In this document: positions 31,266 to 63,627 of the stretch, one piece after another
How the letters are laid out: each line of letters opens with the position of its first letter
How positions within the stretch are numbered: position 1 is the first letter of the stretch
From: Scyliorhinus canicula
Taxonomy: Eukaryota
Reading direction: 5' to 3'
NCBI RefSeq assembly: GCF_902713615.1
Contig: NC_052160.1
Location: 137,496,737 to 137,560,736 of the forward strand
Length of the DNA stretch: 64,000 nucleotides
Program-made: the position numbers and the translations under genes
Notes under the pieces: model-generated
The model's database searches: none
Told to the model about the DNA's origin: nothing
What the model saw: the letters and a program-made list of their open reading frames with translations, nothing else

Positions 31266-31875
31266 GGGCTGGATTCTCCATTCGGAAGACTAAGTGTTGA
31301 CGTCAGCAGAGCATGTGTGAACTTTTATGACCGCAAAATTGGCGGGAAACCCTCACGGTACCGGTGAGGGATGAGCATCAGTGCCGAGTGGAACTCCCAA
31401 GGACTGTGGCGAAAATGGCTGGAGAATGGCCGGGTCCCTGGCCGCGCATTCGCACGGCTGCCGACCTGCACCGGTCACACTGTACAACATGGCGCCAGCC
31501 GAGCGCTAACCCAACCCATCAACTGCGACCGCACAGCCCACCCGCTGGCCACCCACCACCAGTCCCCCCAGCCCACGCAGAAACCCCTTGGCCAGCGGCA
31601 CAGATCCCGGCCGAGTGTGGCGGCGCTGGACACGGTCCGCAGCCGGCACGCGGGGTTCCCGCACGCTCCAGATCACATGTGGCCCGCGCCGTCGGGAACT
31701 CGGCCCATCGGGGGTGGGAGCAGGGCGGGTGGGCTGACCGGTGACGTTCTGATGATGTTGAAATGGCGCAGTGCGCGTCAGAATGGCGGACCGGCGTCAA
31801 ACCACACCTGCCCCGATTCTGCCGTCGGAATCCATTCTCCGCCCGATCGCTGATCACGATTTCGGCGCTGGGCTA
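31266..31875. mobile_element. GC-rich Harbinger-type MITE (right TIR lost)
   Basis: Starts GGGCTGGATTCTCC; similar internal blocks. Confidence 0.6.
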
Positions 31876-32195
31876 TGATGTTCTGCTGTCATAACATTAC
31901 CATATTTAATGAGGAAAGAAAACTGGACATTTGCCACCTCACCGCCCGAGGTTCAGGCTAGTGCTTGGATGTGACACAACTTCCAACTCAATACTTTCTA
32001 TGCGCTTAGGTATTGGATAGACTGTCACAGGTAAAATGTCTGCAGTTCAGCAATTTGCCAGATGCCCCAGGAGTACAGAAGCAGAAAGATTCACAATGTC
32101 CCACCGTAAGTGTAACCAGATAATTCATGCATCCAAGTCGAGTCACTGGATTCAAGAAATAATTTTGATGAAACCATTTTGTCTTCTCTACCTAG

Positions 32196-32272
32196 GCAGA
32201 AGAATTATCTGCGCTATTTTATCTGGAGCATTTTATGTTGGGCGTTTTAGCCAAACTAAAAATATAAAGATG
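32196..32272 (+). CDS. Gene A TM-position exon, reads QKNYLRYFIWSILCWAF* in phase 2
   Basis: CCTAG| acceptor and G|GTAAGT donor match the gene B TM exon; 24 nt shorter and stop-containing. Confidence 0.65.
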
Positions 32273-32567
32273 GTAAGTCGTTGATTTTAACCTGTGCATT
32301 TATGTGCAAAATATTTGGAAGAATTGTTTGTAATCTGCCCATTATACATACTTCAGACAGGATGACAGGATAAGAACAACATGGCCCAGGTTTTACAGCC
32401 TCTGTCACATGATAGGATATGATGGGATCTGTCAAAATAAGCGGCCATTTAAATGGGCTGCCACTTCTGTGGGGGGTAAAACTCAGGTAAAAACAGGTAA
32501 ACATCCATTCATTTTATCATAGATTGGGATCATTTTTATTTTTATTGACCAGTCAAGTAGCTTTCAG

Positions 32568-32917
32568 GGGCAGCACGGTAGCATAGTGGTTAGCACAATT
32601 GTTTCACAGCTCCTGGGTCCCAGGTTCGATTCCGGCTTGGGTCACTGTTTGTGCAGAGTCTGCACATCCTCCCCGTGTCTGCGTGGGTTACCTCCTGGTG
32701 CTCCGGTTTCCTCCCACAGTCCAAAGATGTGCAGGTTAGGTGGATTGGCCATGATAAATTGCCCTTAGTGTCCAAAATTGCCCTTAGTGTTGGGTGGGGT
32801 TACGGGGGTTATGGGGATAGGGTGGAGGTGTTGACCTTGGGTAGGGCGCTCTTTCCAAGAGCTGGTGCAGACTCAATGGGCTGAATGGCCTCCTTCTGCA
32901 CTGTAAATTCTATGATA
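32568..32917 (+). mobile_element. HE1-type V-SINE, full length
   Basis: Head, V-domain, CR1 tail; 3' part also at 19130-19350 and 20390-20582. Confidence 0.85.
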
Positions 32918-34711: not shown

Positions 34712-35046
34712 CTTCATAGAATCGGAGAATTTACAGTGCAGGAGAAGGCCATTCGGCCCATTGAGTTTGCACTGGCCCTTGGAAAAGGCACCCTATATAA
34801 GCCCATGCCTCCATCCTATCCCCGTAACCCAGTAACCCCACCTAACCTTTTGGACACTAAAAGGCAATTTAGTGTAGCTAATCCCCCTAACCTGCACATC
34901 TTTAGACAGTGCAAGGAAACCGGAGCACCCGAAGGAAACACATGCAGACACGGGGAGAACGTGCAGACTCCCCACAGACATTGACCCGAGGCCAGAATTG
35001 TACCCGGGACCTGGAGCTGTGAGGCAGCAGTGACACTATGCCACCC
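34712..35046 (-). mobile_element. HE1-type V-SINE
   Basis: Head, V-domain, tail. Confidence 0.8.
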
Positions 35047-37227: not shown

Positions 37228-37570
37228 TTAGAATTTAGAACAGTACAGCACAGAACAGGCCCTTCGGCCCTCAATGTTGTGCCGAGCAATGATCACCCTA
37301 CTCAAACTCACATATCCACCATATACCCGTAACCCAACAACTCCCCCTTAACCTTACTTTTTAGGACACTACGGGCAATTTAGCATGGCCAATCCACCTA
37401 ACCCGCACATCTTTGGACTGTGGGAGGAAACCGGAGCACCCGGAGGAAACCCACGCACACACGGGGAGGACGTGCAGACTCCGCACAGTCAGTGACCCAG
37501 CCGGGAACCGAACCTGGGACCCTGGAGCTGTGAAGCATTGATGCTAACCACTATGCTACCGTGCTGCCCC
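37228..37570 (-). mobile_element. HE1-type V-SINE
   Basis: Head, V-domain, tail. Confidence 0.85.
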
Positions 37571-40600: not shown

Positions 40601-41132
40601 AGGACATGCATTTTGTTTTCTGTAAACTCCAATCGAGGCTGCCAGAGTATCGAAGTTGCGCTTGGTCAGAATTTGGATAAATTGTCCCAAGAAGGAAAAT
40701 GGCGAGGAGCAAATGAACTGCGAGGCAAAGCACATCTTATAGAATGCACTGTACAGAATTTAAATGATTTGATAGAGATTGCAAAAGCTGTGCAGTTTCA
40801 ACACTGCTTGCAGCAGTCATTCTGATTCTAACAATTAAACAGTTGATCCAATTCTTCAAAGAACACTAAGAAAGAGAACAATTAGGCTGTTATATAGCAC
40901 CCAGAATGTTGTACCATGAATGCATTGGTACTTATTTATTCAAACGAGACATGTTGTAAGGTCTGAGGGTGTCACAACTGAAAACTCCTTTCTATTCTGA
41001 GCGATGGTCGTGGCTATGATATCACAAGTGCTAAAAGGGAAGGATATGACTGATTAGAGTTTTCAGTGCAGAAGTGGGAGCGCTGAAGTCAAGACCTGTG
41101 TGTGGAAAGGGGAGATGCAAAACATTGAAACA

Positions 41133-41172
41133 ATGGGTTTTACCCTTCTCCTGTCCGTTGCTTGCCTATCAG
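41133..41172 (+). CDS. Gene B exon 1, signal peptide MGFTLLLSVACLS (in-frame upstream ATG at 41115 would add MQNIET)
   Basis: Hydrophobic leader ending in phase-1 donor CAG|GTAAGA, matching the phase of the IgV exon. Confidence 0.85.
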
Positions 41173-44100
41173 GTAAGAACATATTGATCTGCTTTGGGTT
41201 TTTGAAAGCAATGTGTAGTTACGTCAGTCTGACCAGAAGTGAAAACCTTGTGACATCGGGCCAGCTGCTAAGAAATGTCTTTCTGCTTTTCAAAAACGTA
41301 ATTATTTCTCAAGATCAGGAATCAATTATCTTTGGAGAAAAGGAGGAAAAAATGTGTCTCCTATTTCACACAATAAATAATACAATGGCACCCCATTTTA
41401 ACAAACTCAAACCTCCTGCTTTAATGATCTGTTGCTTTAGTCGTGATTGGTGTGAAGCTAGATGTTCAAACATGGATGAGGTGAATTTTATGAGCAGACA
41501 GATTATTATGCTATCTGTCTGCTAATGAAGTTTTACACTTTGAGCTGATCAAGTGTCTTTAAATGACTTAACCATTCTCATTCGCCATAAAAATATTAGT
41601 TCATAAATCACTTGGGAAGTATCAACTAAATCTGAGTCAAAGTTTGACGTGGAGACTGACTTAATCTCAATGTATCTGCAAAATGGGTGAGAATTTGAAG
41701 TTGGAATAAGATATTGCGACCATTTGAAATCATTCCCTGTAACACTGACAAACGTCAAAGCAGAGCAGGGGAAGTTTATAAAAATTCCAAAACATTTCTA
41801 AAATTTTTATATTTTATAACCAATTTTAAAATCCGAGGTTTTAGCCACCGCCGTCGAATGAGCTTGCCCATGCGACGTGGTGGCAAAGTCTGACCTGGTG
41901 AGGAATCTCTGCCTTTGGAGATTCGTACAGACGTGTCACCCTATGTATAAACTGAACAATGTCGTTTTAGAATCATGTTGATTAAAAGGGGAATTTCATG
42001 TGTTAAATAGGCAGAAAACCGTCACGTGACTTTTCATCAATAGGTCTGACTGATTTATTTTAATGACTGTTTTTAAACAATGAAACGTTTGCGCAATTGA
42101 TACTATGTCATAATTGTTCATAAGTTGCACCCTTGGAATATACTCAGCACCATTCACAAATGGAGGACACCATTTTGACTCCACTCCAGCCTTCAATATG
42201 CCTGGGGTGCGATTCCCCCACCTCTCAAACCCCTCCCTTTCCGGCGTGGCGTTCCAAGACCTCCGCTAGAAATGGAATTCTTACAATTACGTAAACTATA
42301 AGCCCCCTCCCCCACCACCACCACCACCACCACCACTCCCCGCACGGGAAGTCTCGCACTACCATGTTTCTCGTTTGGCTGCCCACTCACATAAACCAGC
42401 TGGGAAGCCCCGTGGGTCAGGAAACATGGGATGAAATTGTGGCCTTTGAAGAATGGCACACACATGCATTGTGTCCTCACAATACTTTCTCTATTGTTCC
42501 CGGCTCTTCTGCTGTCATCTGAATGCAAGTGGGATCGATTCTACTCCGGTGAAGGACACAAAACATTGCAGAGGCACTTTAAATAAAGCCGGGACAGAGG
42601 CCACAACATCTCCGAGAGAGATTCCCCAAGACGTTAGGAGAGTAGTAGACTTGACTTGACTTGAAAATGAATTCAAAAATATTGAATAACTAATTGTTGC
42701 TTGGTGGGAAAGGCGGTGTGTTCTTTCTAGGGGTTTTCATTTTTTCAACATTATTGAGAAAATAAGGACAGGATTTTCCATCCTTTTCCACCGGCGGGAT
42801 CTTCTGGTCTCTCTGAAGGCGGCCCACACGGCGGGTACCCCGGTGGCATAGCCAGCGAGTAACTCAAATGGCCATTGACCAGGGGGACTGGAAAATCCTG
42901 CCAGTGGCCAATGGTGAGCCATGTTGACTGCTGGAAAACCCGCTGTTGGTGCGTCGGAAAATCCCAGCCCAGGATAAAGAGCCTGGGTCACCGCAGAGAA
43001 AAAATTACCCCACAAATTTCATCCAGTGTCAATTGTAAAGGTAACATAGGTTGTAGTGAGTGTCGGGCATGATCGAGACAGTGCCTATCACTGCCAACAG
43101 CAACATTCTCTCCCAAGGCAATGTGTCCAGCTTAGAGGCATTAATTGGTCAAAAGCAGTTCTAATGGGCGGACATGTCATTTCATAGAAGCAACTGCTCC
43201 ACTCGGAACTCGGCCATGACAGGAGGCTCCCAGGGCGGTAGCGTAAAGCTTTAGGGATGCCCTCGCTGAAGAGGGCTAACATCCCCCCCTGAGTCACGGG
43301 AGACCCTGGCTTGTGACCGACCAAAATGGAGGAGGTTCGTTCGAGGAAACACTGAACACCTTCGAGAGACGTGGTCAGGAATGTGAAGAGGCAAAGTCAA
43401 AGTGTGGAGGGAATGCACAAACCTCCAGAGAACCCATCTACCTGACCCTTGTAGCAGCACCTGTTTCACTTTTAGCAAAGTCTTCAAATCACGGACTGGA
43501 CTTACCCACCATCACAGAACCCATGGAACCAGATTGGAAGCAAATCATCCTCAATGAGTGCTTGAGAAGGGGGAGATATTACACCATTCTCTGGTGTTCC
43601 TGCAAGCTCCTCAGATTGCACTCTCTCATAGCCCTGTGACTGCACTTTCACCAGCATTATTACAGGGTGCTGCATCAACATCTTGAACTGCAACAACTTG
43701 CTGACAAAGTCTGACCCGAACGTGGATGTAAGCCTTAACCATGCAGACAGCCTCATTTCTTGTTTGTCAAACCCAATAAGAGGAAATCAGAAAATGATTA
43801 ACAAGGAACAAACTGTTCTGCAAAACACCAGTTCCTGTTATTTGTACAATTTTCCAGACCACATCTGGCAAAGTCGTCCAGGTGTACCTCCCAACAAAAA
43901 CTGTAAAAATGCACCATTCATCCGCTGCCTCATTTGTTTCTCACTCTTGGATCTCTTCCCTCACGGAGCCAATTGAATTATTCTGGATCTATCTCTGCAC
44001 CCTCGCTTCCACCAAGCTCTGATTCCAGTGTGTCAGTTCCATTCCCTTCTTCCCAGCCCTATTGTTCTACAATACTGAAGTCTTATATCCTGCTGCAACA

Positions 44101-47026
44101 TACCTTCTGACTTATCGCTCAGCCTGATAAAGTGCCACATAACAGTTTTAATGCCTATGGACTAAAGGGACAGCGGCAGCATGGAAACAAAGGTGGCTGA
44201 GTGAGAGGGGACAGTGCAGGTGTGAACAGTTATTTTATAAATTGGAAGGAGGTATATCACAGGGTTCCTCAGTGGCTGATATTAGGACCTACTTTCCTTG
44301 ATCTAAATTGATGACTCAGATTTGGCTGTGGCAGCACAGTCCCAAAATTTGCAGATGACCCAATGCTTGGGAGTACTGTAAACCTCGAGGAAGACTTCAA
44401 TAATAGAGTTAGTATGGTGGAACGGTCAGACACTTGGCAGCTGAAATTCGATGCAGAAAAGTTGGGAAGTGATTCATTTTGAAGGAAGAACAAAGAAGTA
44501 TAAAGGATACAGTTTGAAAGGGGGTACAGGAGCAGAGAGCCTGGGGGTAAGTGTGCACAAATCATTGATTGTGACAGGGAAGGTTGAGATAGATGTTGAC
44601 AGGCCCTATGGGATCCTGATCTTTTTAATTACAGGCATTACACACCAAAGCAAGGAAGCTATGGTGAAACTTTAGAAAATACTGGTTTGGCCTCAACCCA
44701 TGTCCAAATCCAGGCAAAACATTTTGGGAAGGATACGGAGGCAGTGGAGAGAATGTAGAAAACACTTCCCAGAATGGTTCCAGACATTAGTGATTTCAGT
44801 CACATGGATGAATTGGAGAAGCTGAGGCTGTTGTGCTTAGAGAAGATTGAGAAGAGTTTTTCAAGAACATGAGGGGGCTTAAACAGGGCAGAAATAGAGA
44901 AATTGTACCCAATGGTGCAAGGGTTGATGAATGGCGTGGTGTCAAACCTTTTTACGCAGCCAGCGAGCGGTTCGGATCTGCAATGCCCCGTCTGACAGCC
45001 TCGTGGAGGCTGATTCAATCATAGTTTTGGAGAAGAAATTGGATAATTACCTGAAAGGAAAATAATTGCGGGACCATGAGGTAATTGTGGAGGTGTGGGA
45101 CCAGCTGAGTAACTCCTGCAGGGAGCTGGAACAGTCATGATGTCCTGAATGGCCTCCTTCAGTGCTGTAATCATTCTATTATTCTGTGAAGATTCTATAA
45201 AGCCTCACCCTCAAAGTCCAATGTTACAATCGCGCTAAAGATTTGGAGCAACGTTACTTTGGGACCGTTAGATTTGCTGCTCCCGGCTGTGATTTTCAAA
45301 CTTAAACTGGAGAAAGAGCGGGATCAACATGATGAAAACTAACCATCCTCACAAATCCGTGCCTCATTTCAGGGCTTGCACGATACACCGAATGATACCC
45401 TCCATGCCCTTGCGGTCTTCCTTGCCCTTGCAGTCTTCCTCAGACACATTTACTCTGACTCTCATGAACGTTCCGCCTTCAACCCACCCTGGAGCCAAAC
45501 TCTACCTTCTCACCCTGTTACCCTTACCTTGTGCCATTCTTGAAAGTTATGGGTGCACTGCTCTACCGTCTAGCCTCTCACTTCCACCCAAACTTATGTC
45601 CCCGGTTTCGGTCTCACCCATGTATCTCAGACCAGTTCTTTCATGTGCCAGTATTGGGCATGTTTGCAACTCCAGACCCATTAGAACTTCAACTGGTCCA
45701 GATTGCCACTTTGGATCCCAGGACAAAATCTACCCGCGACATTCCAGCTTGGACCCAACCGCCAGCCCCTCTGAAATCCATGTGCAATTTGGGACATGAC
45801 AGTAGTCCTCGCCCCATCCCTGCCTGGCACCTTCTGCCCGCCACAAATCCCCTTCCTCAAACCAGTACATTTTTGTCCCTTGCTGCGCATTTGTCATTAA
45901 AAAACCTGACAGAAATAAAACTCGGTAAACTGGGAGCAAACAGGTGGATACAACGGGAAATGCTGAAGCAAGTGGGCGGTCAGTGAATAAAAACCGATGA
46001 GACGAGCAGAGAGCTGCAGGATTGAGGACAATGAGGGAGGCAGTCAGAGAGAGTGAAGGAATGAAAAGCCATCAAAGGACTAGAGAAGGTTCCAGAAAGG
46101 AACATGAGTGGAACACTGAAGGGAGAAGGGAACCTCAATTCTAATGTTCTTATATTTCTCTGAAGTGTAGCACTGTTGCATTTTAAAACATTATTATGTT
46201 TGCTACTTACAGTTACATACGCTTCAATAACTGGGCCAAGTAGAACGGTTGCGACAGAGAGAGAATCAGTCCAATTCAAATGCAATTTCGACACATACTA
46301 TCAAGGTCATCAGAAGTACTGGTGTAAAGGTTATTACCGCAGGAGCTGTACTATTTTAGTACAAACCCAAGGCAAGGAAATGAAAAGCCAAGATGGCAGA
46401 GTAAAGATTAAGGCTGACAATAAGAAAGGAGAACTTACAGTAGAAATGGAGCAATTAAACCAAAGCGATAATGGCTGGTACTGGTGCGGAATAGAAATAA
46501 ATCATGCTCTGGATCTATTAAGTCCCACAGAACTTAAAGTAAATCAAGGTAGGACTCAAATTTATGTTCATTTGTGTTTATATATTTAATGACATGGTTA
46601 TATTATATAATTTATATAATTTGATGCAGGCTTTATTACATATTTTGCAAAATCTCCAAGATCCTGATTTCTCAGTCAAATGTTAAAATGTGCGGAGTTT
46701 GCACCTTTTCCCTGGGCGGCATTCTCTCATGCCGCACCGTATGGGAGAATCGCCGTTCGCGCCATTTTTCCCTGCGGCGCTGGTCCGACGCCGGCAGGCC
46801 ATTCTCCGAGGAGCAGAGAATCTACGCCATTTGCGCCGGCATGTTAGGCGCGGCGCTGGTCGCGGGCCGCTATCCACGGCCAGGCCGCCAATTCTCCGGC
46901 CTTGATGGGCCGAGCTGCCACGCGGAACTGGCAGAGGCCCGCTGGCACCGTTCACACCTGCTCGCAGCCGGCGGGAACTCTGCGCATAGGGTCGAGGGGC
47001 GACCTGTTGGACGGGGAAAGCGCTCC

Positions 47027-47077
<51 letters not shown>

Positions 47078-50000
47078 CGGCTCCAATGGGGTCTGGCCTG
47101 CGATCGGGGCCTACCGATCGGCGGACCGGCCTCTCCAGCCCCAGTCCTATTTTATTACTCAGCCGGCCCCTGAACCCCCACGCCAAGTCGTGTCGGGGTC
47201 GACGCGATGAGGAAGTCGCGCGGGATGGCGTGGCCCAACTGCACATGCGTAGGTTGGCGCGTCACCCATTTGGTGCCAGGAAGGGAGGCTGGAGCGGCGT
47301 GAACTGCTCCAGCGCTGTGCTGCCCCCGCTGTGGGAGCCAGAATCGGTAGTGCCCGTGTGCGTTTCGTGCCATCATGAAACGCGACGGCGTTCACGACGG
47401 CGCGAACACTTCCTCCGTTTCGGAGAATCCTGCCCCCTGTGTCTACATGGGTTTCCTCCGAGTGCTACAGTTTCCTCCCACAAGTCCCAAAAGACGTGCT
47501 GTTAGGTGAATTGGACATTCTGAATTCTCCCTCTTGTGTACCCGAACAGGCGCCGGAATGTGGCAACTAGGGGATTTTCACAGTAACTTCATTGCAGTGT
47601 TAATGTAAGCCTACTTGTGACACTGATAAAGATTATTATTATTATTATAATTAGAGCAATATTGTAAAGCCATGTTTTGATCATTCTATCTAATCCAGAA
47701 TTTCAATCAGTGATCACTGCAAATGCATCTTGATCTGTAACATAGGACAGTAAATAATGGAATAATATTTTTATACATCATTTTGTACAGCTCCAAAATC
47801 ACTTACAAAGAACAAGGAAAGACTAAGGTAAATACCAACGTATTTGAACTGGTGACATCGAGCATTTTAAAAATATATCTGCACAAGTGTCATAATGAGA
47901 AATGTCACAGTGCCACATGCAAGATTTTTCTCTCTGGAATCAGGGTCGAGGCCAACATTTATAGCCCATTCCTAATTGCCCTTCAAAAGGTGGTGGTGAA
48001 CCGCTGCAATCCATGTGGTGTAGGTACACCCACTGTGCTGTTAGGGAAGGAGTTCCAGGATTTTGACCCAGCGACAATGAAGGGACGGCCAATATATTTC
48101 CAAGTCAGGATGGTGAGTGGCTTAGAGAGGAACTTCCCGGAGATGGGGTTCCCAGGTATCTGCTGCCCTTGTCCTTCTAGATGGTTGTGGTGATGGGTTT
48201 GATAAGTGCTGTCTACAGAGCCTTTGTGAGTTGCTGCAGTGCATCCTGTAGATGTTATGCACTGCTGCCACTGTGCACCAGTGAATGCTTAAGGTGGTGC
48301 ATGGGCTGCCAGTCAAGTGCGTTGCTTTGTCCTGGATGGTGTTGAGCTTCTTGAGTGTTGTTGGAGTTGCACTCATCCAGGCAAGTGGAGAGTGTTTCAT
48401 CACACTCCTGACTTGTGCCTTGTAGATGCTGGACAGGCTATGGGGCGTTACGCTCCGCAGAATTCCTAACCTCTGACCTGTGCTTGAAGTTACAATATTT
48501 AACTGGCTGGGCCATTTCAGTTCCTGGTCAGAGGTAACCCCCAGGATGTTGACAGTGCAGGATGGCCAACATAATGCCATTGGACGTCAAGAGGTGATGG
48601 TTCTTTTGTTGCTCTGCCGTAGGTCAGGTCATCGTTTCACCTAGATGGAGAATGTTGATGATGTAGAGAACGATTGTCATTTTCAGCATCAGCACCAGCT
48701 GAAATTTGTCTTGAATTTCCTGGGCATTCCCCCCATTCTGCCAGTGTAACATCAGCAGAGGTTAACGGAAAAGCTTTGCTTTCCCGATCTTCTTGATGGA
48801 GCAACAGCACTAAGGAAACTTATCCCCTTAGAATCTGAAGACAACTTCCTACTTCACCAATTCCTCCAGCAACTATTGGTGGCCTGACTTAAATGAATTG
48901 CGCTGAATAATGGGTGATATTGTGGACTGGGCTAAGACTACTCAAACCCAAACCTTTTGAGTACTGGTATTAATTTATTCCTTCAAGGGATGTGAATGTT
49001 GCTCACTCGCACAGCATTTATTGCCCATTCCTAATTACCCTTGAGAAGGTGGTGGGTGAGCCACCATCATGAACGGTTGCAGTCCGTGTGGTGTAGGCAC
49101 ACCCACAGTGCTGCTAGGGAGGGATTTCCAGGATTTTGACCCAGCAACAGTGAGACATTTTCAAGTCCGGATAGTGAATGACTTAGAGGAGAACTTCCAG
49201 GTGACAGTTTCCCCATGCGCCTGCAGTTCTTGCCCTTCTAGGTGGTAGAGGTCACAGGTTTGGAAGGTGCTGTCAAAGGAGCCTTAGTGAGTTCCTCCGG
49301 TGCATCGATGGTGGAGGAGGTGAATGTTTAAGGTGGTGAATGGAGTGCCAATCAAGCGGGCTGCTTCATCCTGGATGTATCAAGTTCCTCAATAATTGTG
49401 GAATTGTGCCTTGGAGATGGTGGACAGACTTTGGGAAGTCAGGAGGTGAGTTCTTCACCTCAGCATTCCCACCCTCTGGCCAAGTCTTGCAACCACAGTA
49501 TTCATATGATTGGACCAGTTTAGTTTCTGTCTGTTGATAATGTTTAAGGTTGATAGCATACAAGGAGAAGAGCTCATATTTCAATTAGATTGAGTTGGAT
49601 TCAAGAACAGCTTCAGAAATGGAAATATATTTTTCTATCACACGACCTCACAGTCAGGGGCGGCACGTTGACGCAGTGGTTAGCACTGCTGCCTACGGTG
49701 CTGAGGACCCGGGTTCGATCCCGGCCCAGGATCACTGTCGGTGTGGAGTTTGCACATTCTCCCCGTGTCTGCGGAGGTTTCACCCCCACAACCCAAAGAC
49801 GTGCAGGTTAGGTAGATTGGCCACGCTAAATTGCCCTTAATCGGAAAAAAATAATTGGATACTCTAAAAAAAATTGAAAAATACAGCCTCACAGTCCTGC
49901 ACATTGTTTATGTACAACAATAATCCCCCCAGTAAATATACAAGATTGATTTATTTGCATTTTGTTTTCAATGCTGGTAAAGGTATCAGTTTAATTATGT

Positions 50001-53000
50001 ATGTGCCAAGTCAATGTAGCCAATTTCTTTCAGCCATCTGCCAACTGTACAGCTGTAATCTTAAAGGTTTATAGTACAAGTGAGGAGTTCTGCGCGCATT
50101 AAAAATTAAAATAATTAGTCAGAAAATGGTGGGCAGTGCCAACTAAATTCCGAGCATGTGCTCCCGGTAAGGAACGTTCCTTTCCAGGGTATGAATTGTA
50201 AATTTATCCCTAGCTCTCACAGAAACCCGGGAAATGGAAGTGATCGGCAAGGTGATTTTACCTATGATGGGCATCGCAAATTACTGTCTCTGCAACAACA
50301 TGAGCTTGCATTTGTATAGCACCACACACTCACTAAAATGTCCCAATGTGCTTCGCAAGAGCTTTATCAACTAAAAGTTGGCTTTGATATAAACAGATTA
50401 GGGCAGATTAAGCCGATATTAGGGTAGATGAGCAAAAAAGGTAGGTTTTAAGAAGCATCGTATAGGAAGAAAGAGAGGTAGAGAGCTGTCGAGAGTGAAT
50501 TTCAGAGCTTGGGGCCCAGGTGGCCCATAGCCTCCCTCGGATGGAGCCATTAAAATGAGGGATGATCGGAGGTCAGGGATATCTCAGAGGGTTGTAGGGT
50601 TTGAGGAGATTACTGAACAAGGATGAGTATTTTAAAGGGAACAAGAAAAATAACTGAAAAGGCAGAATTGAATTTTTTTAAAGCGCGAGTTAACTTAGTT
50701 TTGCTACAAGTTGATTCACGATTCACGTAGGGAAATGTAGCTTTTGTACCATTCTTTTAGTGCTGCATTTTGCACAGCAACCTCATTTCTAGAACTGAAA
50801 TAGCCAAATGGCTGAGGTTAGGAGCACAGGAATTGCTAAAAAAAAAAAAGAATGAGTGGGACCCACCCTCCTCTCATCCTTTTTTTTAAATTTAGAGTAC
50901 CCAATTCATTTTTTCCAATTTAAGGAGCAATTTAGCGTGGCCAATCCACCCACCCTGCACATCTTTGGGTTGTGGGGGCGAAACCCACACAAACATGGGG
51001 AGAATGTGCAAACTCCACATGGACAGTGACCCAGAGCCGGGATTGAACCTGGGACCTCAGTGCTGTGAGACTGCAGAGCTAACCACTGTGCCACCGCGCT
51101 GCCCGCCTCCTCCCATCCTGACAACCACACAATATAATGATAATGGGGTTACTGATTAATTATAATCAATCCATACCAATTAGATGACAACAGACATGGG
51201 CACTGTGTAAAGAAAACTCCGAGTGGTGTAATGTTTATCCCTCCTCATGGTTTGTAGCAGGTTTTGCATTATGTGTTCTGCGGTATTTTCCAAATTCTAA
51301 CCATTTACATGCTGAGGTGTCTCAGATTTGCCCCTACCATTTTTATTTTATGACCGTTTAATCCTTTAAGGTTTCCACATGCCATCATGGTAAGACACAT
51401 GATTTTATTACAATTGATGCCAAAATTAATTTTTGGTCTGGGGATGGCTTAGCACAGTGGGCTAAATAGCTGGCTTGTAATGCAGAACAAGGCCAGCAGC
51501 GCGGGTTCAATTCCCGTACCGGCCTCCCCGAACAGGCGGCGGAATGTGGCGACTAGGGGCTTTTCACAGTAACTTCATTGAACCCTACTTGTGACAATAA
51601 GTGATTATTATTATTAATTCATAATCAAAATTGTGCCAGGAATTCAGATTCCTTTCACTTTATCCAGTGGCAGTCTGGGCCCTAAATTCTGAAATTTTGT
51701 CCCTAACCCTTTCCATGTCTCTCCTGTTCTCCTCCTTTACGTTGCTCTGTTACACCTGTCCCTTTAGCTGAGTGGTTGGTTACCTGTCCTGGCAGCTCTG
51801 TATGCGACGCAGTGCCAAATTGTGTCTGCTCATAAGCCTGTGAAAAGCCTTAGAACGTGTCACTGACATTAAAATACAACATAAATGCAAATTATTGTTC
51901 TTGTGGCTGTCACGTTATACAAAAGATTACTGCTGCTTGTCCTGTTGTCTGAAAGGCTCAGAAAAGTAGGGTGAATTAAGAAGAGGATCAATTTTTTTTT
52001 TGAAAAGGACTGTGCTTTCTCTCTAGACGTTCCTCTGTTATCCACTGACGTTTGGCTGAACGATTAGAGTGGCCCTGCAGAGATTTTTATCCCTGATGGA
52101 TTTGGAAGAAATGAGACTTAGAATGTTAAAATTAGGAGACTGCGAAAACGGGGAGACTTGATAGTGGGAAGAGACAACAGTTGCCCTACCTTCTCTCGGG
52201 CAATTGGCGATGGTCACATCTTATTGGTCAACAACAAAAAGTTTGGCAGATATTGAAAACTGTTGCTGTATTGTGCGTGCTTCCACGTCTTGGTCCATGA
52301 GTGGCTGACTACATTGGTCCCCATACTCACATGATTTCTCGCTGTTTTTCGTTGACCGCCTAGCCTGTTCCTGACGCTCGGAATAATCTTTGGGATTTTG
52401 GCGGTGATGATCCTTGGGCTTGTGATCCTCGTCATCAGAAAAATAAGAAAGCACAAATATGACGGTAAGTTCTGAAACCAAAGCTATTTTCACACAGCAA
52501 AAACAAACCCGGCGTTCAAACAAACCAAAGAACCAAAAGGAAACACACCCATTGTGTGGGGCGACCTTGAGCGGATCGTGCCTGTTGAGGTCCTACCAAT
52601 TTCTGCATTTCAACTGCACCGATGTTTCGTCAGGGCTGGAACCTCCTTGTATCTTCAGTTCAACCTGACACAAGTCTCGGTAAAGCACTGAGCCAAAAGT
52701 GATGGTACTTCCTGTATCTCTTTGGAAGAATAGCAACTCTGTTGCAGTGTCCATTCAGCGCAACATAATAGTGACAGGATTGCCAGTAACATTGTGGCAA
52801 TTTGTACGTGGCACATAGCAATGTGGATTGTTTTTTTGCTGATGATTTTAAAATGCTTGGGAGTCATTTTCGCGACACAAAGGTGATTTTATTTCTTAAT
52901 TAAAAGGGTCACTTGTCTGTATTTTCTCTATCTTTTGTGTGCTGAGAGCCAAGTCCATGTTCCAGTATGGTACCAGATCAAGAAGTAGAACAATTATAAT

Positions 53001-56000
53001 TTCTCGAACAAAGATCGAAAGCAAGATGTATGAATGAGCTATCAAATATCAAATGATCCCTTTGTGAATAGAACTACCATTATTAAATAAGCTGATGGAT
53101 AATCACATGCAGAATTCCTAATATTTTCTCCACTTGTCACACAATTCAAAGTTAGATTCAGTTAAAATAATTGAATCAGGCAGATATTTTTCACTTGAAA
53201 TTAAAAATGAAATGAAAACCGCTTATTGTCGAACAATAGATTCTGTTCAGACAGCATCTTCTGTACCCTGATACCCTGAGATACTTCACACTCAATAAAT
53301 TACTTCTTAAGTGTTGCTGGAAAAAAGGGACTTGCTGTTGAAGCTTTTCATTTTGTACTCAGCAGGACAAATTCACAAGAGTACGAAATCTCAAAGTGAA
53401 CGAGAATTGATTCTGCTTGAGAAGAGGGTGTGGATTGGTTGGCAAGTAGATTCTTGCAAATCTGTCCATGATGAGTGCAAGGCAAAAAGTTTCTACAGCA
53501 TTTCTCCTTTTTCAGCAATATTCTGTGCTATCAAGTGACTACTTCTTATGTCTCATCATTATTGTTAAAAAAGGACAGGGAGGGTGCCCAACAAGGCCCT
53601 GCAGACACCCAATGGAACAAATGAGCAGATAATAGGACAATTTCCATATTATTAATACAAGTGAGCTCACCAGCACAAATCTCACCAGAAAAGTAATCTC
53701 TTGATGACACTCAATCTCAACGGCTCAGCCTTCTGTGCGTAATTACTTACTGCTCCAGGTGAAGATTTGGATGAGTGCAAAGTGCAATTGAAAGGAATGC
53801 CGTCAATTAAAAGGGAGGTAGAATACAAGACCAGGGATGTACTTCTGAGGCTCTATAAGGCTCTGGTCAGACCCCATTTAGAGTACTGTAAACAATTTTG
53901 GGCTCCGTATCTAAGGAAGGACGTGCTGGCCCTGGAAAGGGTCCAGTGGAGGTTCACAAGAATGATCCCTAGAATGAAGAAATTGTCGTATGAGGAACGG
54001 TTGAGGACTCTGGGTCTGTACTCGTTGGAGTTGAGAAGGATGAGGGGGGATCTTATTGAAACTTACAGGATACTGCCAGGCGTGGGTTACTCAGGTCCCA
54101 CATGGCGGGATCTGGAAGGTGTGTCTGCAGGGGACGTCCTGGAGGGGGTCGGCCCCCACGGTGGCCTGGCCCGCAATCGGGGTCCACCGATCGGCGGGCG
54201 GGCTGGTTCCATGGGGGCCTATGTTCCTTTGCGCCAGGCCCCTGTAGGGCTCTGCCATGTTGCCCGGGGGCTGGCGCAGAGAAGGAAGCCCCCGCACATG
54301 CGCAGACGCATGGCAGCTGTAGCAGGCATGCACAGAATTACGCCAGCCGTTCCGCGCATGCGTGGAATCACGCTGGCCATTCCTCGGCGGCTGGAGCTGT
54401 AGGGACCACTCTGGTGCCGACCTAGCCCCCGAGGAAGGGGCGCATTCCCCATTATCAGGGACCATTGACGCCGGAGTGGTTGGAGCCGTTTTTCACGCCG
54501 GCGCGTGGACATAGCCCCATTATTGGAGAAACCCGACCCATAGTTCTCGACGGGGCGTGATGCGAAGATCTAGCCAGCAGCCAATGGTGATGTGCCTCTG
54601 CCACCGGGAAGCAGACGATGGGTGGGGTGGGGTGGGGGGGGGGGGGGGGGGGGGGGGGGGTGGAAAATTGAGGAAGAGACAGCCAGAGACAAAGGAAAAC
54701 AACAGTAAGTGAAACTGTGCGTCAGCCTCACAAGAGATAGACAAGAAGGTCAATGAGTGGAAAGAAAATAAAATGACAGACAAGGAGCAGAAAGAATTAA
54801 GACTGCGGACCATATGTTCCTGCAGAAATTTGTTGTTGTGTGTGGCCACCTTTTTCACCATACAGAACCTTTACATTATTTTGCTACATTAACACAAGAC
54901 AAGGCCTGTGTAGTACTTACTGCAGCCACAGACACACACACACACACAACTTGAACAATGAACCGGGAAACATTTCAGCTCAGCACATGGGAGTATAACA
55001 AGTGATGTAGCTGTGTCACCCATTTTAGAAACCATCTACTTTCAATTTCCATTTATTCCAGTGGAGATAGAAATCAGTCAGTTTCTATAGTATCAAACCT
55101 ACCGCCCCAGCTGAAAAGTTTTAAATTTATCATCGGAGTGGGAGTGGGTAGGGGGAGCTGAGGTACAGTTACAGGAAAGCTTCTTGCACTTCAATTTTGT
55201 CCAAGAGAAATGTTACAAGTTATCAATCAGTTGATATAAACAGAATCAAAATGAGTAACTGCTTAATCTTAAAATGAATTGTATTCAAATTGAGTGAAAT
55301 TAATGAAAGTCAATTGAGCAGAATATATTCCGAGATTTAATACAACTGCCTGACCCCGGCTGAAAACATTTTATCTAACAATATGTAACTAATATAAACC
55401 CATGATTGAAATTTTCTCATTAATTCATTGTGAAAGTTTCAGCTACTTACAAAGGATAGACCACTGCTTTCTCAAAATTACCTCAATACACTCATTCATC
55501 CCAGTTTTTCATGTAATGTTGAATATCAAAAAGTGCAATTTAATTTTTAAAACACAGCATTTAACACACGCCACGAAAACAGTCGCATTTTGAACTTTCC
55601 TGCTGCTTTGTTTATTATCTTTATGTTTGCATTTTCTAGACAACAGAGAGAAGGAATCAACAATAGAAAATTCTGTTCCAAAGTCAAACTCTGTGGTAAG
55701 GCTGTAACCTTGTTGACCAAACTGGATGCTTCCATACATGTGGCATCTCCCAGCCTGTGGAGTTGGCATGATAGATATATGTGCTTCATCTGAAATTCCT
55801 TCGAGCCAGGACTCACAACAGCTTTCAACTGGTGAATCCTATGTCCTCCTGAAGATAGAATGGAAAGTATTATCTGGATAGCATGTTCATATCCTCTCAA
55901 CATGCCCCCTTGGCATTGAGAGGTCTGGGCGCTGAATCTCAGTGGCGGGGAAGAGTCGGAAAGCGTGCCCTCCACTTTGGGAAAATTTTCCGCTGTGCAA

Positions 56001-57626
56001 TTCCTCCCCGTTTTTCTGGTCCCCATCTGTTCCAGAAGCATCCAGGGCCCAATGAGAATTTGGGGCCCTAGGTTTTGTTGGTTGGAAACCTGCTTTGAAG
56101 CTAATACATGCAACCAGACCAATCACTGATCGCTCTTTACACATTGTAGCATCATAGAATCATAGAATTTACAGTGCAGAAGGAGGCCATTCGGCCCATC
56201 GCACCTGCACCAGCCCTTGGAAAGAGAACCCTAACCAAGCCCACACCTCCATCCTATCCCCGCAACCCAGCAACCCCACCCAACCCTTTAGGACACTAAG
56301 GGGCAATTTAGCATGGCCAGTCCACCTAACCTGCACATCTTTGGACTTGTGGGAGGGAACCGGAGCACCCGGAGGAAACCCACGCAGATACGAGGAGATC
56401 GTGCAGACTCCGCACAGACAGTGACCAGCGCCGGCCCTAGGGTTGCTGGCGCCCCGGGCAAGCTGAACTTCGGCGCCCTTGGGGGGGGGGGGGGGGGGGC
56501 TGGGGGGGCGGGGCCGAGGCCGAGGGGGGGCAGGGGCGGGGCCGTGGGGGGCGGGGCCGGGGGGCGGCGGACGGAGGGGGGGGCGGACGGAGGGGGGGGT
56601 CGGAGGGGGGGCGGAAGGAGCCGCCCTGGGGGAGGGCGGCCACTGCGCATGCGCTGGTTGGCACTGGCCCAACTGCGCATGCGCGGGACCCGAGTCTCTG
56701 GCGCCCCCTAGCACATGGCGCCCCGGGCGACTGCCCGAGTTGCCGGTACCTTGGGCCGACCCTGACAGTGACCCAAGCCGGGAATCAAACCTGGGACCCT
56801 GGAACTGGGAAGCAACAGTGCTAACCACTGTTCTACTGTGCCGCCCCCAATCCCCCAAACTCTGTTTAGTATCTCCAATGTAGAAACCACTACGTTGTGT
56901 GCAGCAAACACCCTGTACTAAATTAAATGCAAATAAATCTCCAAAGTACTTCAGTTAAAATCAATACCAATTAAAACTTCATTTGAAAAAAATACTAAAA
57001 CTTGAATTTGGATGGAATGATTCACTTGTACTTTTATTCCTCAAATTCAGTTCATCGCCCAGTTTTGCTCATGTTATGTTAATGTTCATCTTAAATGGAT
57101 TAAGATGGGACCCTGGAGCTGCGAAGCAACAGTGCTAATCACTGTGTGACCTTGCCATCATCAAGCTGGGCCTGTCAATAGTACACTTGTCCGTGATCCC
57201 TTGAGAGGGACAGTGATGCCAAAATATGGCGAAAGTATTTTCTATAACCCAAGTTACTGATTAACCTAAGCAGTTGTATTTAACATGAATTCACTGCCTA
57301 TTTATTTTGGAGCTTTGAGGTGAGTTTATTTTCTGAAGTAAAAGTTTACCTTAATTTTCGTTCTTGTAATTCGATGATGGATTGATCCGTTGCTTCATTC
57401 TCCTCAATCACATCCTCATATTCTTTATCTGCAGCTGTCCAGAGAGTTGGAAGAAGGAGTTACTTACGCCACTGTGACAATTCAGCCCAATAATCACCCT
57501 CAGGAGCACACTGCTGCTTGCGATAATGTGAAACCTTCCAACAGTCAGGAAGCAATCAAGCCCACAGTTATTGAGGCACCAGCTTCAGAGCCAACAGAAT
57601 ATTCCACAGTTGTGTTCAAAAAGTAA
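41133..57626 (+). CDS. Gene B: CD300/CMRF35-like (pIgR-family) inhibitory receptor, 6 coding exons, 253 aa; tail resembles CD300LF
   Basis: Exons 41133-41172, 46213-46548, 47791-47827, 52364-52464, 55640-55695, 57435-57626 all have GT/AG borders with matching phases (1,1,2,1,0) and total 762 nt of open frame. Product: leader, IgV, stalk, TM, ITIM/ITSM tail. Confidence 0.9.
42766..42970. mobile_element. Short MITE of the same TIR class
   Basis: GGACAGGATTTTCC ... GGAAAATCCCAGCCC. Confidence 0.6.
43090..43620 (+). mobile_element. RTE-clade LINE 3' fragment
   Basis: KQLLHSELGH.RRLPGR..K...ETLACDRPKWRRFVR (degraded). Confidence 0.7.
44140..45190 (+). mobile_element. Degraded CR1 RT/3' fragment
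   Basis: GP.LFL, KFADD-like and 3' tail motifs. Confidence 0.65.
46213..46548 (+). CDS. Gene B exon 2, IgV domain (FKC...KYWCKGYYRRSC...DNGWYWCG...ELKVNQ)
   Basis: Acceptor TTACAG|, donor AAG|GTAGGA. Canonical B/F-strand Cys, C-strand Trp, and the extra C-x7-C pair typical of CD300/pIgR/TREM; NQS sequon. Confidence 0.95.
46714..47435. mobile_element. GC-rich Harbinger-type MITE inserted in a V-SINE, TSD CCT
   Basis: Host V-domain rejoins as TTTTCCCTGTGTCT; contains a ~45-nt G run. Confidence 0.8.
47791..47827 (+). CDS. Gene B exon 3, short stalk (APKSLTKNKERLS)
   Basis: TTTTGTACAG| acceptor, AAG|GTAAAT donor; 37 nt, phase 1 to 2, bridges the IgV and TM exons. Confidence 0.8.
47930..49530 (-). 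mobile_element. Two overlapping fragments of a second CR1/L2-type LINE family
   Basis: IYKAQVRSVM.HSPLAWM...TLKKL.TIQDKA...HCSNS.RL.RQHL; duplicated segment at ~47970-48200 and ~49020-49270. Confidence 0.7.
52364..52464 (+). CDS. Gene B exon 4, transmembrane (LFLTLGIIFGILAVMILGLVILVI-RKIRKHKYD)
   Basis: CCTAG| acceptor, G|GTAAGT donor; 24 uncharged residues followed by a basic stop-transfer stretch. Confidence 0.92.
53790..54075 (+). mobile_element. CR1 RT C-terminal fragment
   Basis: LYKALVRPHLEYC.QFWAPYLRKD...LERVQ.RFTRMIP...SYEERL. Confidence 0.85.
54078..54540. mobile_element. Partial GC-rich MITE following a CR1 fragment
   Basis: Ends GGAGAAACCCGACCC; internal blocks shared with other copies. 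Confidence 0.55.
55640..55695 (+). CDS. Gene B exon 5, cytoplasmic spacer (DNREKESTIENSVPKSNSV)
   Basis: TTTTCTAG| acceptor, GTG|GTAAGG donor; phase 1 to 0 joins the TM exon to the last exon exactly. Confidence 0.8.
56152..56848 (-). mobile_element. HE1-type V-SINE split by a hAT MITE
   Basis: Halves rejoin at ACAGTGAC. Confidence 0.85.
56426..56764. mobile_element. hAT-type MITE, 339 bp, 8-bp TSD ACAGTGAC, nested in an HE1 SINE
   Basis: TIRs CAGCGCCGGCCC / GGGCCGACCCTG; TSD at 56418-56425 and 56765-56772. Confidence 0.85.
57435..57626 (+). CDS. Gene B exon 6, ITIM (VTYATV) plus ITSM-like (TEYSTV) tail ending VVFKK*
   Basis: TTTATCTGCAG| acceptor, phase 0, TAA at 57624-57626. Confidence 0.9.
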   Translation: MSRELEEGVTYATVTIQPNNHPQEHTAACDNVKPSNSQEAIKPTVIEAPASEPTEYSTVVFKK

Positions 57627-57771
57627 TATTCTTCCAACATGACGTCTGCAAGCTGCTTTCGACCCACTTTCTGAAGAACGATATTCCTGTAAATTGTAAA
57701 TTATTCCGTTAGGGCTTGAGTATAGTTTCTGACCTTGTCCAGCAAGTGCATATTGGAAATGTCTCGGGCAG

Positions 57772-58120
57772 AATCATAGAATCATAGAATTCACAATGCA
57801 AAAGGAGGCCATTCAGCCCATCGAGTCTGCACCGGCCCTTGGAAAGAGCATCCTACTTAAGCCTGCACCTCCACCCTATCCCTGTAACCCAGTAACCCCA
57901 CCTAACCTTTTGGACACTAAGGGGCAATTTAGCCTGGCCAATCCACCTAATCTGCACATCTTTGGACTGTGGGAGGAAACCGGAGCACCCGGAGGAAACC
58001 CACGCAGACACGGGGAGAACGTGCAGACTCCGCACAGACAGTGACGCAAGCCGGGAATCGAACCCAGGTCCCTGGCGCTGTGAACCAACAGTGCTAACCA
58101 CTGTGCTACCGTGCCGCCCC
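57772..58120 (-). mobile_element. HE1-type V-SINE in the gene B 3' region
   Basis: Head, V-domain, tail; partial copy also at 59915-60142. Confidence 0.85.
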
Positions 58121-61100: not shown

Positions 61101-63627
61101 TTTAGCCTGGCTGTTGAAACGCTGAAGAAGTTACACCTTGTTGAATAGGTTGTAGTTGGGTTTTTAAACAGTGAATAAATTTGTAATTCCTACCAAACTC
61201 CATCACAAGCCCTGACAAAGTAATTTTAAATTTGTGGAATATCAAATTTCTTCATTCTGGTGAAAAGAATCCACGGACGAGATTCTTCGCCCTCCCCACA
61301 GCGTATTTCTCAGCCGAGGGAGATGGCCCGTCATTGGCCAGTGGCAGGATCTTTTGTTCCCAGCGCTGTCAATGGGATTTCCCATTGAGTCTATCCCATG
61401 CCACCGGGAAACCCTTCGCGGGGGTGCGGCATCGACGGGACGGGAATATCCCACCAGCGTGAACAGCCGGAAGATCTCAACTTACATAGTTTTAAGTTTT
61501 ATAATATTTGAGCTTCTATCTAAATCCAATCACAATCATTTATCTCGCTATCTAAAAATCAAAATTCGAAGTGAAGGGATTCAGTGTTTTTAATTTCCTG
61601 CTTTGCTGCGTGTGAGAATGCTTCACTATGATTGGCTGCTTACCCTCCTTGCTGATGTCAAGACTTGGAGATCCCCTTGACTTGTTACGATATTTACCTT
61701 GCCTTTGAGCAAGGGGAAATCCGCATCGCAGAGCTTGGGAGATCTTTGTGAGCAGTTTTCTTAGAGGCCAATGGTGAATGGCATTGTTTTGCTGCTGGTC
61801 ACGAAATCTAGCCCAGTGTCCATGACGTGAAGTCACAAATTGGTACCTTTGGAGCTTGTCAATATTTAAGAACCAACAACCAATAGGCTTCTAAGTAAAT
61901 GGATGATTAACTCACCACTAAGTAGAGTCAAGTAGAATGGTTCTTTTAATTTATATTATAGTCCAAGTCCACATTGTTAACAATCCTTTGCCCAGTTGAA
62001 CAATAACTACAGAACTGAACAGTTAACTGACATTACATCAAATCCTACATCTGACTGTAGTTATGAAAAAGCAACAAGTATAGTGTCAAATACACAATCA
62101 ACCAGAGGCTGAGAATGAGCTGGGTATTCATAATTTATTATCCAGGAATCCCGAGACCGACAAAGATTCTTCATCATTGAATCTGATCACTTCAGCAGAC
62201 TGAATAAACTGGAGGATGGTGTGTAATGTTAGAGAGATGATTTTTCTGCAGCGGGAGATAATGAATTGCATTATGAACGGTTTGAAAGTAATTGCTGATT
62301 TAGGGGCAGCACGGTGGTGCAGTGGTTAGCACTGTTGCCCCTCGCCGTCGAGGACCCGGGTTCGTACCCGGCCCCGGATCACTGTCTGTGTGGAATTTAC
62401 ACATTCTCCCCGTGGCTGCGTGGGTCTCACCCCCAACAACCCAATAATGTGCAGGATAGGTGGATTGCCCGCGCTAAATTGGAAAATAAAGAGAATTGGG
62501 TACTCTAAATTTAAAACAAAAACAAAGAAACTTTGTTCCCAGATACGTAAACAAAGCTAAAGTCTGCAACTGTGCAAATCCTTTTTGTTTTATCAATCTT
62601 GAAGCAGAACTGTACACGAATTTAAAGTGATATGTTTAGAAATGTCTTGTATAATAACTTCTGACTTTTGAAGTAGGATAACTAAATTCAACATACTTAG
62701 GAATCCATAAACAATGTAGCTGATGTATTTACTGTGGTACTAATGGGACACTAACCCACAATATTTTAATTTACATTTGTAGTTGAAGAATTGTTAATTC
62801 CCAGATCCCTGTTACTTTGTCACCTGTGTAGAATTACTTTATTGCATGTTGAAATTACTGTACTCTTCTTGCAAAATGGCATTAAAACTTCACAAATACT
62901 TGATTTGACTATGTAGTTTTAGTTTGATCATCCAAAAGTACCATTCAAACCCACAACTTCCACAATCTTGAAGAATAAGGGCAACAGATGTTTGGGAAAC
63001 CTTTGCAAGTTTCCCTTTAAGCAAGGGCGGCACAGTGGTTAGCATTGCTGCCTCACGGCGCCGAGGATCCGGTTTCGATCCCGGCCCTGGGTCACTGTCC
63101 ATGTGGAGTTTGCATATTCTCTCCGTGTCTGTGTGGGTCTCACCCCCACAACCCAAAGATGCGCAGGGTAGGTGGATTGGCCACGCTAAATTGCCCCTTA
63201 ATTGGGAAAAACAATGAATTGGGTACTTAAAATTTCTTTTTTTTTTAAGTTCCCCTTCAAGCCACACACCATCCTGACTTGGAACTACATCGACGTTCCT
63301 TCACTGTGACTGGGTCAAAATTCTGAAACTCCCTCCCTAACAGCACTGTGGCTGTACCTGCACCATATGGACTGCAGCGGTTCAAGAAGGCAGCTCACCA
63401 CCACCTTCTCATTCCACAGAAAGGAAAAAGGAAGGCTTGCATTTAAATAGCACCTTTCACAACCTCCGGGCTACCACAAATGCATTACAATTAAGTATTT
63501 TGAAGTGAAGTCACTTTGTCACATGGGAAATGCACAGCCACAAGCAGAAGTGAAATCAGGCCTGATCATTTGTTTTGAAAACAGAATACTCAACAAATTA
63601 GGCAGAATCTGTCGAGGGAGCATCAGT

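Follow-up and report, generated by a model that had tools for sequence, protein, structure and literature searches.

A CD300LF-like receptor gene in the catshark window

The stretch of DNA analysed here (the window) comprises 64,000 nucleotides (nt) of the Scyliorhinus canicula genome (contig NC_052160.1, positions 137,496,737 to 137,560,736 of the forward strand), and its main feature is a six-exon gene for a 253-residue immunoglobulin (Ig) receptor. The gene has an intact structure, orthologues in sharks and rays, a record of purifying selection, and a V domain and cytoplasmic tail motifs that resemble those of CD300LF. It is probably, and we hold this with some confidence, a selectively maintained elasmobranch counterpart of CD300LF (also CMRF35-like molecule 1, CLM-1), a proposed lipid-binding receptor that would recruit SHP phosphatases.

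An earlier reading of the bare sequence by a model (the original prediction) had proposed six phase-compatible exons, and this gene model is correct to the base. The joined exons (40, 336, 37, 101, 56 and 192 nt; Table 1) give an open frame of 762 nt with a TAA stop, and canonical AG...GT sites flank each internal boundary. The exons were sought by an unbiased scan in which all phase-compatible open AG...GT exons were enumerated, and both small exons (37 and 56 nt) ranked top in that scan. Exon 4 is the strongest hydrophobic open stretch of the region and is 82% identical to its Carcharodon counterpart. The gene has one V exon, and no further V exon was found between 46.5 and 57.6 kb.

The start codon of exon 1 lies in an A(-3)/G(+4) context, and the Carcharodon and Heptranchias proteins begin at the equivalent codon. 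A second in-frame ATG is present 18 nt upstream, at 41115-41117; the orthologues begin at the 41133 ATG, and the upstream ATG, if it lies within the 5' untranslated region (UTR), would extend the signal peptide by MQNIET. At the other end of the gene, neither of the canonical poly(A) signals AATAAA and ATTAAA was found between the stop codon and position 59500 in a scan that excluded 57982-58025.

Table 1. Coordinates of the receptor gene and of other features in the window
Feature	Position	Strand	Description
Upstream tandem neighbour, short MDIR1-type receptor	28935-32253	+	V exon 28935-29270, stalk ~30490, transmembrane exon 32185-32247
Conserved upstream block, putative promoter/5' UTR	40725-41132	+	Part of 40725-41242, which aligns with the Pristis locus at 72% over 529 nt
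Exon 1	41133-41172	+	ATG plus the greater part of the signal peptide (MGFTLLLSVACLS); donor CAG|gtaaga, phase 1
Exon 2	46213-46548	+	V-set Ig domain, 336 nt, phase 1-1; Pfam PF07686
Exon 3	47791-47827	+	Short stalk APKSLTKNKERL; best phase-compatible candidate; Carcharodon counterpart APKSLTMDKERL; aligns with Pristis exon 3
Exon 4	52364-52464	+	Transmembrane helix LFLTLGIIFGILAVMILGLVILVI without charge, and basic stop-transfer RKIRKHKYD
Conserved non-coding element	52665-53074		Intron 4; matches the same intron of Pristis at 73% identity across 420 nt
Exon 4b relic	53680-53817	+	Aligns with the exon 4b region of Pristis at 70% identity across 135 nt
CR1-like LINE reverse-transcriptase C-terminal fragment	53818-54402	+	Intron 4; open frame with ...LYKALVRPHLEYC...
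Exon 5	55640-55695	+	Cytoplasmic DNREKESTIENSVPKSNSV; top-scoring candidate; 90% identical to Carcharodon; aligns with Pristis exon 5
Exon 6, coding part	57435-57626	+	ITIM tail, Cys219, C-terminal EPTEYSTVVFKK; stop TAA 57624-57626
ITIM VTYATV	57459-57476	+	V199-V204, Y201; fits (I/V/L/S)xYxx(L/V/I)
C-terminal EPTEYSTV	57588-57611	+	E242-V249, Y246; ITSM-type TxYxxV
Proximal 3' UTR	57627-57765	+	Conserved with Pristis; blastn block 57411-57765, 72% identical

Features of the encoded protein

The deduced polypeptide is predicted to be a type I membrane protein with a signal peptide, a single CD300-type V domain, a stalk of 13 residues, one transmembrane helix and a tail of 91 residues. The V-set Ig domain is recognized by Pfam with an E-value of 3.7e-15 and carries one NQS sequon, encoded in exon 2. 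It contains the canonical Cys37/Cys105 pair plus an extra Cys51-x7-Cys59 pair, together with a KYWCKG motif; the extra pair and the motif are invariant in the orthologue alignment. The domain is thus predicted to be held by two disulfides, the second of which, C-x7-C, would lie between strands C and C'. The transmembrane segment (residues 139-162, 24 residues) contains no charged residue. The tail holds just two tyrosines, Y201 in VTYATV, which fits an immunoreceptor tyrosine-based inhibitory motif (ITIM), and Y246 in EPTEYSTV, seven residues from the C-terminus, which resembles a tyrosine-based switch motif of immunoreceptors (ITSM). The C-x7-C IgV domain, the uncharged transmembrane segment and the two tail motifs were all features named in the original prediction, and all are present. 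A Pfam search with the tail gave no match; a weak match to PF27946 (C1orf162) was returned for two of the orthologues.

Orthologues and purifying selection

With the V domain as query, an exhaustive HMMER search picked out a 277-residue protein of the same layout, and the search was repeated with this protein and then with a profile. These repeats yielded elasmobranch proteins 252-279 residues long, and orthologues of the 253-residue form are known from at least ten other elasmobranchs (e.g. XP_041050571.1 of Carcharodon, XP_067863717.1 of Heptranchias, XP_048468159.1 of Rhincodon and XP_051891006.1 of Pristis). All matches came from other species, the protein of the window species itself not being among them. 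Nearly all of the orthologues are labelled 'CMRF35-like molecule 1' by NCBI, which is the systematic name of CD300LF; those so labelled are from Carcharodon, Cetorhinus, Heptranchias, Rhincodon, Pristis, Mobula, Narcine, Leucoraja and Amblyraja, and those of Pristiophorus and Rhinoraja stand under other automatic names. The gene is therefore sound rather than new, since annotation as CLM-1 already exists for its orthologues in many genomes of elasmobranchs.

These proteins share the length, the six-exon layout and the motifs of the window gene. Gap-free alignment with the 253-residue forms gave identities of 76% with Carcharodon, 71% with Heptranchias, 67% with Rhincodon and 58-63% with batoids, a full-length range of 58-76% in which both small exons are conserved. 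A full-length match of this kind lies far beyond chance. When the annotated 253-residue isoform of the sawfish Pristis pectinata was mapped on its own locus, the exon lengths obtained were 40, 336, 37, 101, 56 and 192 nt with AG...GT throughout. Moreover, the window and the Pristis locus are collinear over the upstream short-receptor gene, the promoter block, all of the exons, the proximal 3' UTR and the downstream blocks. There are two differences within the group. Batoids also make a 277-residue isoform by means of a 72-nt cassette exon, the splice sites of which are lost in the window, and a tyrosine in a TYxNV context, present in most members, is a cysteine in the window species.

The ratio of nonsynonymous to synonymous substitution rates (dN/dS) between the window and Pristis genes, calculated by the Nei-Gojobori (NG86) method, was 0.25 overall at a dS of 0.92, with values of 0.30 for the V domain, 0.18 for the stalk and transmembrane segment and 0.24 for the tail. 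A ratio of 0.25 at this level of synonymous divergence indicates a functional gene under purifying selection.

Placement of the V domain

The position of the V domain relative to the full mammalian set of CD300, pIgR D1, FCMR, FCAMR and TREM proteins was taken from ranked sequence and fold scores, the phylogenetic tree having been built without that set. In per-domain phmmer searches of the PDB, mouse and human CD300LF scored 69 bits (E 3e-18), followed by CD300A (46 bits), CD300C (45 bits) and pIgR D1 (45 bits), with NKp44 (26 bits), FCMR (23.5 bits) and TREM2 (22 bits) weaker still. TREM2 and TLT-1, at ~22 bits and E ~1e-3, fall well under the CD300 proteins, so that the domain is not close to the TREM group. 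The AlphaFold (AF2) model of the domain has a mean predicted local distance difference test score of 90.2. When this model was compared with the PDB by Foldseek, the ten best matches were all CD300lf/IREM-1, then came pIgR D1; against Swiss-Prot the order was CLM-5, CLM-1 (mouse, human and rat), CLM-3, CLM-7, CLM-2, TMIGD3 and CLM-8, and then pIgR and FCAMR.

The family is marked by a second, C-x7-C disulfide and a YWC[KR] motif (PMC3031540). The shark protein has a single V-set domain, a YWC[KR]-type motif and CD300 proteins as its nearest relatives. The assignment of the IgV domain to the CD300/pIgR clan in the original prediction is thus borne out, with CD300LF nearest by both sequence and fold and no grouping outside CD300, pIgR and TREM. 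In the V-domain tree, the window gene pairs with Carcharodon inside an elasmobranch CLM-1 group that follows the species groups (supports 100/98 for orectolobiforms and 95/97 for batoids) and that stands apart from the short MDIR1-type receptors, including the upstream neighbour, at a split with support 82/79.

Tail motifs and resemblance to CD300LF

The ITIM is invariant, VTYA[TSA]V being present in 12 of the 12 aligned orthologue rows. The terminal motif EPxEYST[VI] is likewise conserved in all of the orthologues, as part of a unit EPxEYST[VI]xFKK. The original prediction had classed the terminal motif as an ITSM, and this stands in part: TxYxxV is found in the window gene and the threonine at -2, the ITSM signature, occurs in several sharks, but a strict Thr-2 is not conserved across elasmobranchs. 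Between the two motifs, a middle tyrosine in TY[DN]NV (YxN, not YxxM) is present in batoids, Carcharodon and Pristiophorus; the corresponding residue is Cys219 in the window (ACDNV), serine in Heptranchias and leucine in Rhincodon. The Cys219 codon, TGC at 57519-57521, is one transition away from TAC (Tyr), and YxN is a Grb2-type site.

Human CLM-1, which has 290 residues in Swiss-Prot, is quoted from residue 251 to 288 in a paper on signalling-motif variants (PMC7242328). The stretch given there, YLTLGAEDQEPTYCNMGHLSSHLPGRGPEEPTEYSTIS, in which the variant Y stands for the reference S251, ends QEPTYCNMGHLSSHLPGRGPEEPTEYSTIS, that is ...EEPTEYSTIS. The original prediction had given the human CD300LF C-terminus as ...EEPTEYSTISRP, and the quoted ...EEPTEYSTIS (PMC7242328) confirms it. 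From the quoted sequence and the length of 290 residues it follows that the motif is real and lies in the same place as in the shark: EPTEYSTV and EPTEYSTI are identical in 7 of 8 residues and are at the same distance from the C-terminus. In local alignments of the shark tail with the human fragment, the score of EPTEYST[VI] was reached by only 4-9 of 5000 shuffles, and the alignment of the Pristis tail with the same fragment extends collinearly through TY.N.

The same two-motif layout is seen in the tail of a caecilian CLM-1 (DGVTYSTV...STEYSTISYK), with an E-value of 3e-5 in a BLASTP comparison of the non-Ig halves. The tail of a ferret protein, CD300A-like in our reading, contains VEYSTV and YYSTVVF (BLASTP of tails, E 0.008). 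Outside the orthologue group, EY[SA]T[IVL] occurs in only 2 among the ~150 best V-domain relatives.

Mammalian CD300LF (CLM-1, IREM-1, LMIR3) thus resembles the shark protein in having a single CD300-type V domain with a C-x7-C disulfide and YWC[KR]G, the domain that is the best sequence and fold match to that of the shark, as well as an uncharged transmembrane segment and a tail in which an ITIM is followed by a C-terminal EPTEYST[IV] (PMC7242328). CLM-1 has been described as inhibitory via SHP-1, which it binds, with two ITIMs, one ITSM and putative p85 and Grb2 sites, and its reported ligands are ceramide and phosphatidylserine (PMC4415817). The two proteins differ in length (253 residues in the shark against 290 in human, with the short stalk noted above), in the number of classical ITIMs (one in the shark instead of two) and in the YxN/YxxM site, which is absent in the window species, the YxN being kept in most orthologues. 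They differ too in tail tyrosines, the shark having two and the human protein more, three of them within the quoted fragment. Human CD300LF has five tail tyrosines. CD300A (CMRF35-like molecule 8, IRp60) is, like the shark receptor, an inhibitory single-V protein, with several ITIMs; its V domain is a weaker match than that of CD300LF (46 against 69 bits) and it has no terminal EPTEYST.

Expression

Over the interval 46150-46620, ten runs hold 0.72 of the sampled sequence words, where the exonic share is 0.69-0.71 and genomic DNA would give 1.0. For the last exon and UTR (57380-58000), word shares of 0.55-0.98 were recorded in RNA-like runs, which suggests that the 3' UTR extends beyond 57765. 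Exon-only word shares were seen in many runs from several studies, and they point indirectly to expression of the gene. Logan contigs from skates, ~1-1.3 kb long, hold the complete coding sequence of the 277-residue isoform.

Assessment of the CD300LF assignment and its alternatives

Several observations weigh against the view that this gene is the shark counterpart of CD300LF and an inhibitory receptor. ITIM and ITSM motifs are short and arise convergently, and in batoids, Chiloscyllium and Pristiophorus the terminal motif has I, L or M instead of the threonine at -2. The YxN site of CD300LF and of most orthologues is absent here, so that the p85/Grb2 docking tyrosine is lacking, and the 45 residues that separate Y201 from Y246 exceed the spacing of many tandem-SH2 docking pairs. 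The V domain is only 33-37% identical to those of mammalian CD300 proteins (33-36% for CD300LF itself), and the tree links the caecilian CLM-1 to the shark group at only 82/79, on a long branch. The support for expression consists of word shares of runs, none of which is on record as RNA, and both ligand and signalling are put forward entirely by analogy.

The low V-domain identity and the weak tree link to tetrapod CLM-1 would also fit a lineage-specific inhibitory member of a cartilaginous-fish MDIR/CD300-like expansion, not one-to-one with CD300LF, in which the tail had converged on SH2 docking. According to a passage in PMC3031540, MDIRs are a multigene family of cartilaginous fish with activating and inhibitory members related to CD300, TREM and pIgR, first described in the clearnose skate in 2006 (Cannon et al., cited therein). 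The window gene belongs with this family by the homology of its V domain to skate MDIR (ABC86795.1; 46% identity) and by its MDIR1-type tandem neighbour, sitting as it does in a tandem array of related receptor genes. Skate MDIR was the best match in the first search, which admitted only proteins of 78-246 residues, and teleost matches cover only the V domain. The skate protein, however, has 164 residues, a short tail-less C-terminus and a transmembrane arginine of the activating type, whereas the product of the window gene has no charge in its transmembrane segment, bears a long tail with an ITIM and falls in a separate V-domain group. What makes independent origin of the tail unlikely is its detail: the C-terminal octapeptide shared with human in all but one residue and equally placed, the collinear order of ITIM, TY.N and terminal motif in rays and human, the tail layout shared by caecilian CLM-1, and the rarity of EY[SA]T[IVL] among the best V-domain relatives.

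The original prediction had also entertained an Ig-binding receptor of the pIgR, FCAMR or FCMR kind, that is, a primitive shark receptor for polymeric Ig or IgM. Both pIgR D1 and FCAMR are significant relatives by sequence and structure; D1 is of the same V subtype with the extra disulfide and gave 45 bits for D1 alone and a template modelling (TM) score of 0.75-0.85. We know of no established pIgR from cartilaginous fish, although these have polymeric IgM and a J chain. The J chain of cartilaginous fish is mentioned in PMC9321927. Against such a role, the shark protein has a single V domain, compared with two in teleost and five in tetrapod pIgR, and its complementarity-determining region 1 (CDR1) is two residues shorter than that of pIgR D1 and has no Arg/His-rich stretch (DTYYQGHQ against PTSVNRHTR in human pIgR D1, two one-residue gaps being needed in the alignment). 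All of the CD300 proteins outscore pIgR D1 by fold, and CD300LF lies far above it by sequence. Moreover, pIgR has several domains, a CDR1 that is longer and rich in Arg, and a tail for transcytosis, whereas the shark has one domain and a tail of the ITIM/ITSM signalling type, as in CD300LF. Neither tandem V-like domains nor a D1-type CDR1 was found, nothing supports antibody binding or transport, and because of the single domain, the shorter CDR1 without an Arg-rich stretch and the signalling tail, an Ig-binding role appears very improbable. Even less probable is a non-functional or unexpressed copy with a frame kept open by chance or by recent duplication. The cysteine at the position of a tyrosine in most orthologues would fit such decay, but the open frame has no interruption and none of the splice sites is damaged, dN/dS is 0.25 against a dS of 0.92, a single conserved orthologue exists in many species, the promoter and an intronic element are conserved, and exon-only word shares recur in many runs from several studies.

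The identification as a CD300LF-like inhibitory receptor, already made in the original prediction, is therefore upheld by the intact gene, the V domain nearest to CD300LF, the uncharged transmembrane segment and the invariant ITIM. Its implied novelty was overstated, given that the orthologues are annotated and that the MDIR family has been known since 2006.

Proposed function and significance

By analogy with CD300LF, the protein is best read as an ITIM/ITSM inhibitory receptor that would recruit SHP phosphatases. Binding of a ligand by the V domain would cluster the receptor, the likeliest ligand being phosphatidylserine, ceramide or another polar lipid in exposed form. Src-family kinases could then phosphorylate Y201 (VTYATV) and Y246 (TEYSTV), and the two phosphotyrosines would dock the SH2 domains of SHP-1/SHP-2. 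The phosphatases would in turn damp activating signals, including those from the charged-transmembrane MDIR1-type receptors encoded alongside. The cell type in which this might occur, like the ligand, the phosphorylation and the phosphatase recruitment, is inferred, the mechanism being drawn from the layout of the protein and from CD300LF.

With this gene, a paired-receptor cluster of a shark gains a clean and verified model of its inhibitory partner. The place of a shark pIgR is left unfilled by it, and no new kind of receptor is added. Full-text literature searches returned no paper on shark CD300LF or its tail, and the deep conservation of the tail may so far have gone unremarked, a modest point. 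A tail of the CD300LF type is recognisable from sharks to humans, and therefore its ancestral roles, such as lipid sensing, dying-cell clearance and myeloid restraint, are testable in cartilaginous fish. A further proposal, on which we are evenly divided, is that the CD300LF tail (ITIM, TY.N and EPTEYST[IV]) and V domain have been kept as one conserved 'anchor' inhibitory gene since before the split between cartilaginous and bony vertebrates. If so, the anchor would have persisted while the receptor cluster around it turned over quickly, CD300LF would rank with the most ancient inhibitory immune receptors that can still be recognised and traced through a one-to-one lineage, and an equally old, conserved ligand, for example an exposed membrane lipid, would be indicated.

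Intron 4, the neighbouring receptor gene and repeats

Intron 4 contains a unique element of 410 nt (Table 1) that has stops in all frames and indels that are not multiples of three, and that is conserved above synonymous sites (proportion of synonymous differences, pS, 0.53). Its conservation makes it a candidate intronic enhancer.

The alternative 72-nt exon of batoids, exon 4b (24155-24226 in the numbering of the Pristis locus), follows the transmembrane exon and encodes a 24-residue cytoplasmic insert, e.g. APTEHMDGCRVEFKGMQAIEGQVT, that gives rise to the 277-residue isoforms. In the window only a relic remains: its acceptor has TG in place of AG, its donor is lost, and splicing at the one pair of sites available locally would yield a 59-nt exon that shifts the frame. 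The annotated shark proteins retrieved have 252-253 residues, without the 24-residue insert. Directly after the relic comes the fragment of a CR1-like long interspersed nuclear element (LINE), with a still open frame of 211 residues. Derivation of batoid exon 4b from this LINE was considered and rejected: homology to the LINE begins at ~53833, and the relic aligns with Pristis upstream of that point. Other degraded LINE copies lie at ~26989-27196 and 22133-22342.

Within the reach of the window and the Pristis locus, only related Ig receptor genes were found, and no flanking non-Ig gene such as those of human 17q25 (RAB37, NHERF1 and others). By tblastn, the V domain of the upstream tandem neighbour is 73% identical to Mustelus 'CMRF35-like molecule 2'; with skate MDIR the identity is 48%, and the order in Pristis is collinear here. 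Its skate and Mustelus relatives have an arginine in the transmembrane region. In the neighbour itself, the conserved YWC reads YGC and the transmembrane arginine of its relatives (IWSVLRW) reads cysteine (IWSILCW), changes that may reflect either decay or divergence.

The large open reading frames in the first 41 kb of the window are of low complexity or derived from repeats. A repeat of ~170 nt resembling a short interspersed nuclear element occurs on both strands (8988-9155, 15949-16117, 32573-32740, 34886-35008, 37397-37564, 56325-56421 and others), is 74-84% identical to copies in the sawfish locus and, when translated, gives recurring ...CGVCTFSPC... peptides. Two blocks downstream of the gene, 61926-62140 and 62523-62913, lie between it and the next V-set receptor gene and are collinear with 31730-32473 of the Pristis locus, at 68-70% identity.

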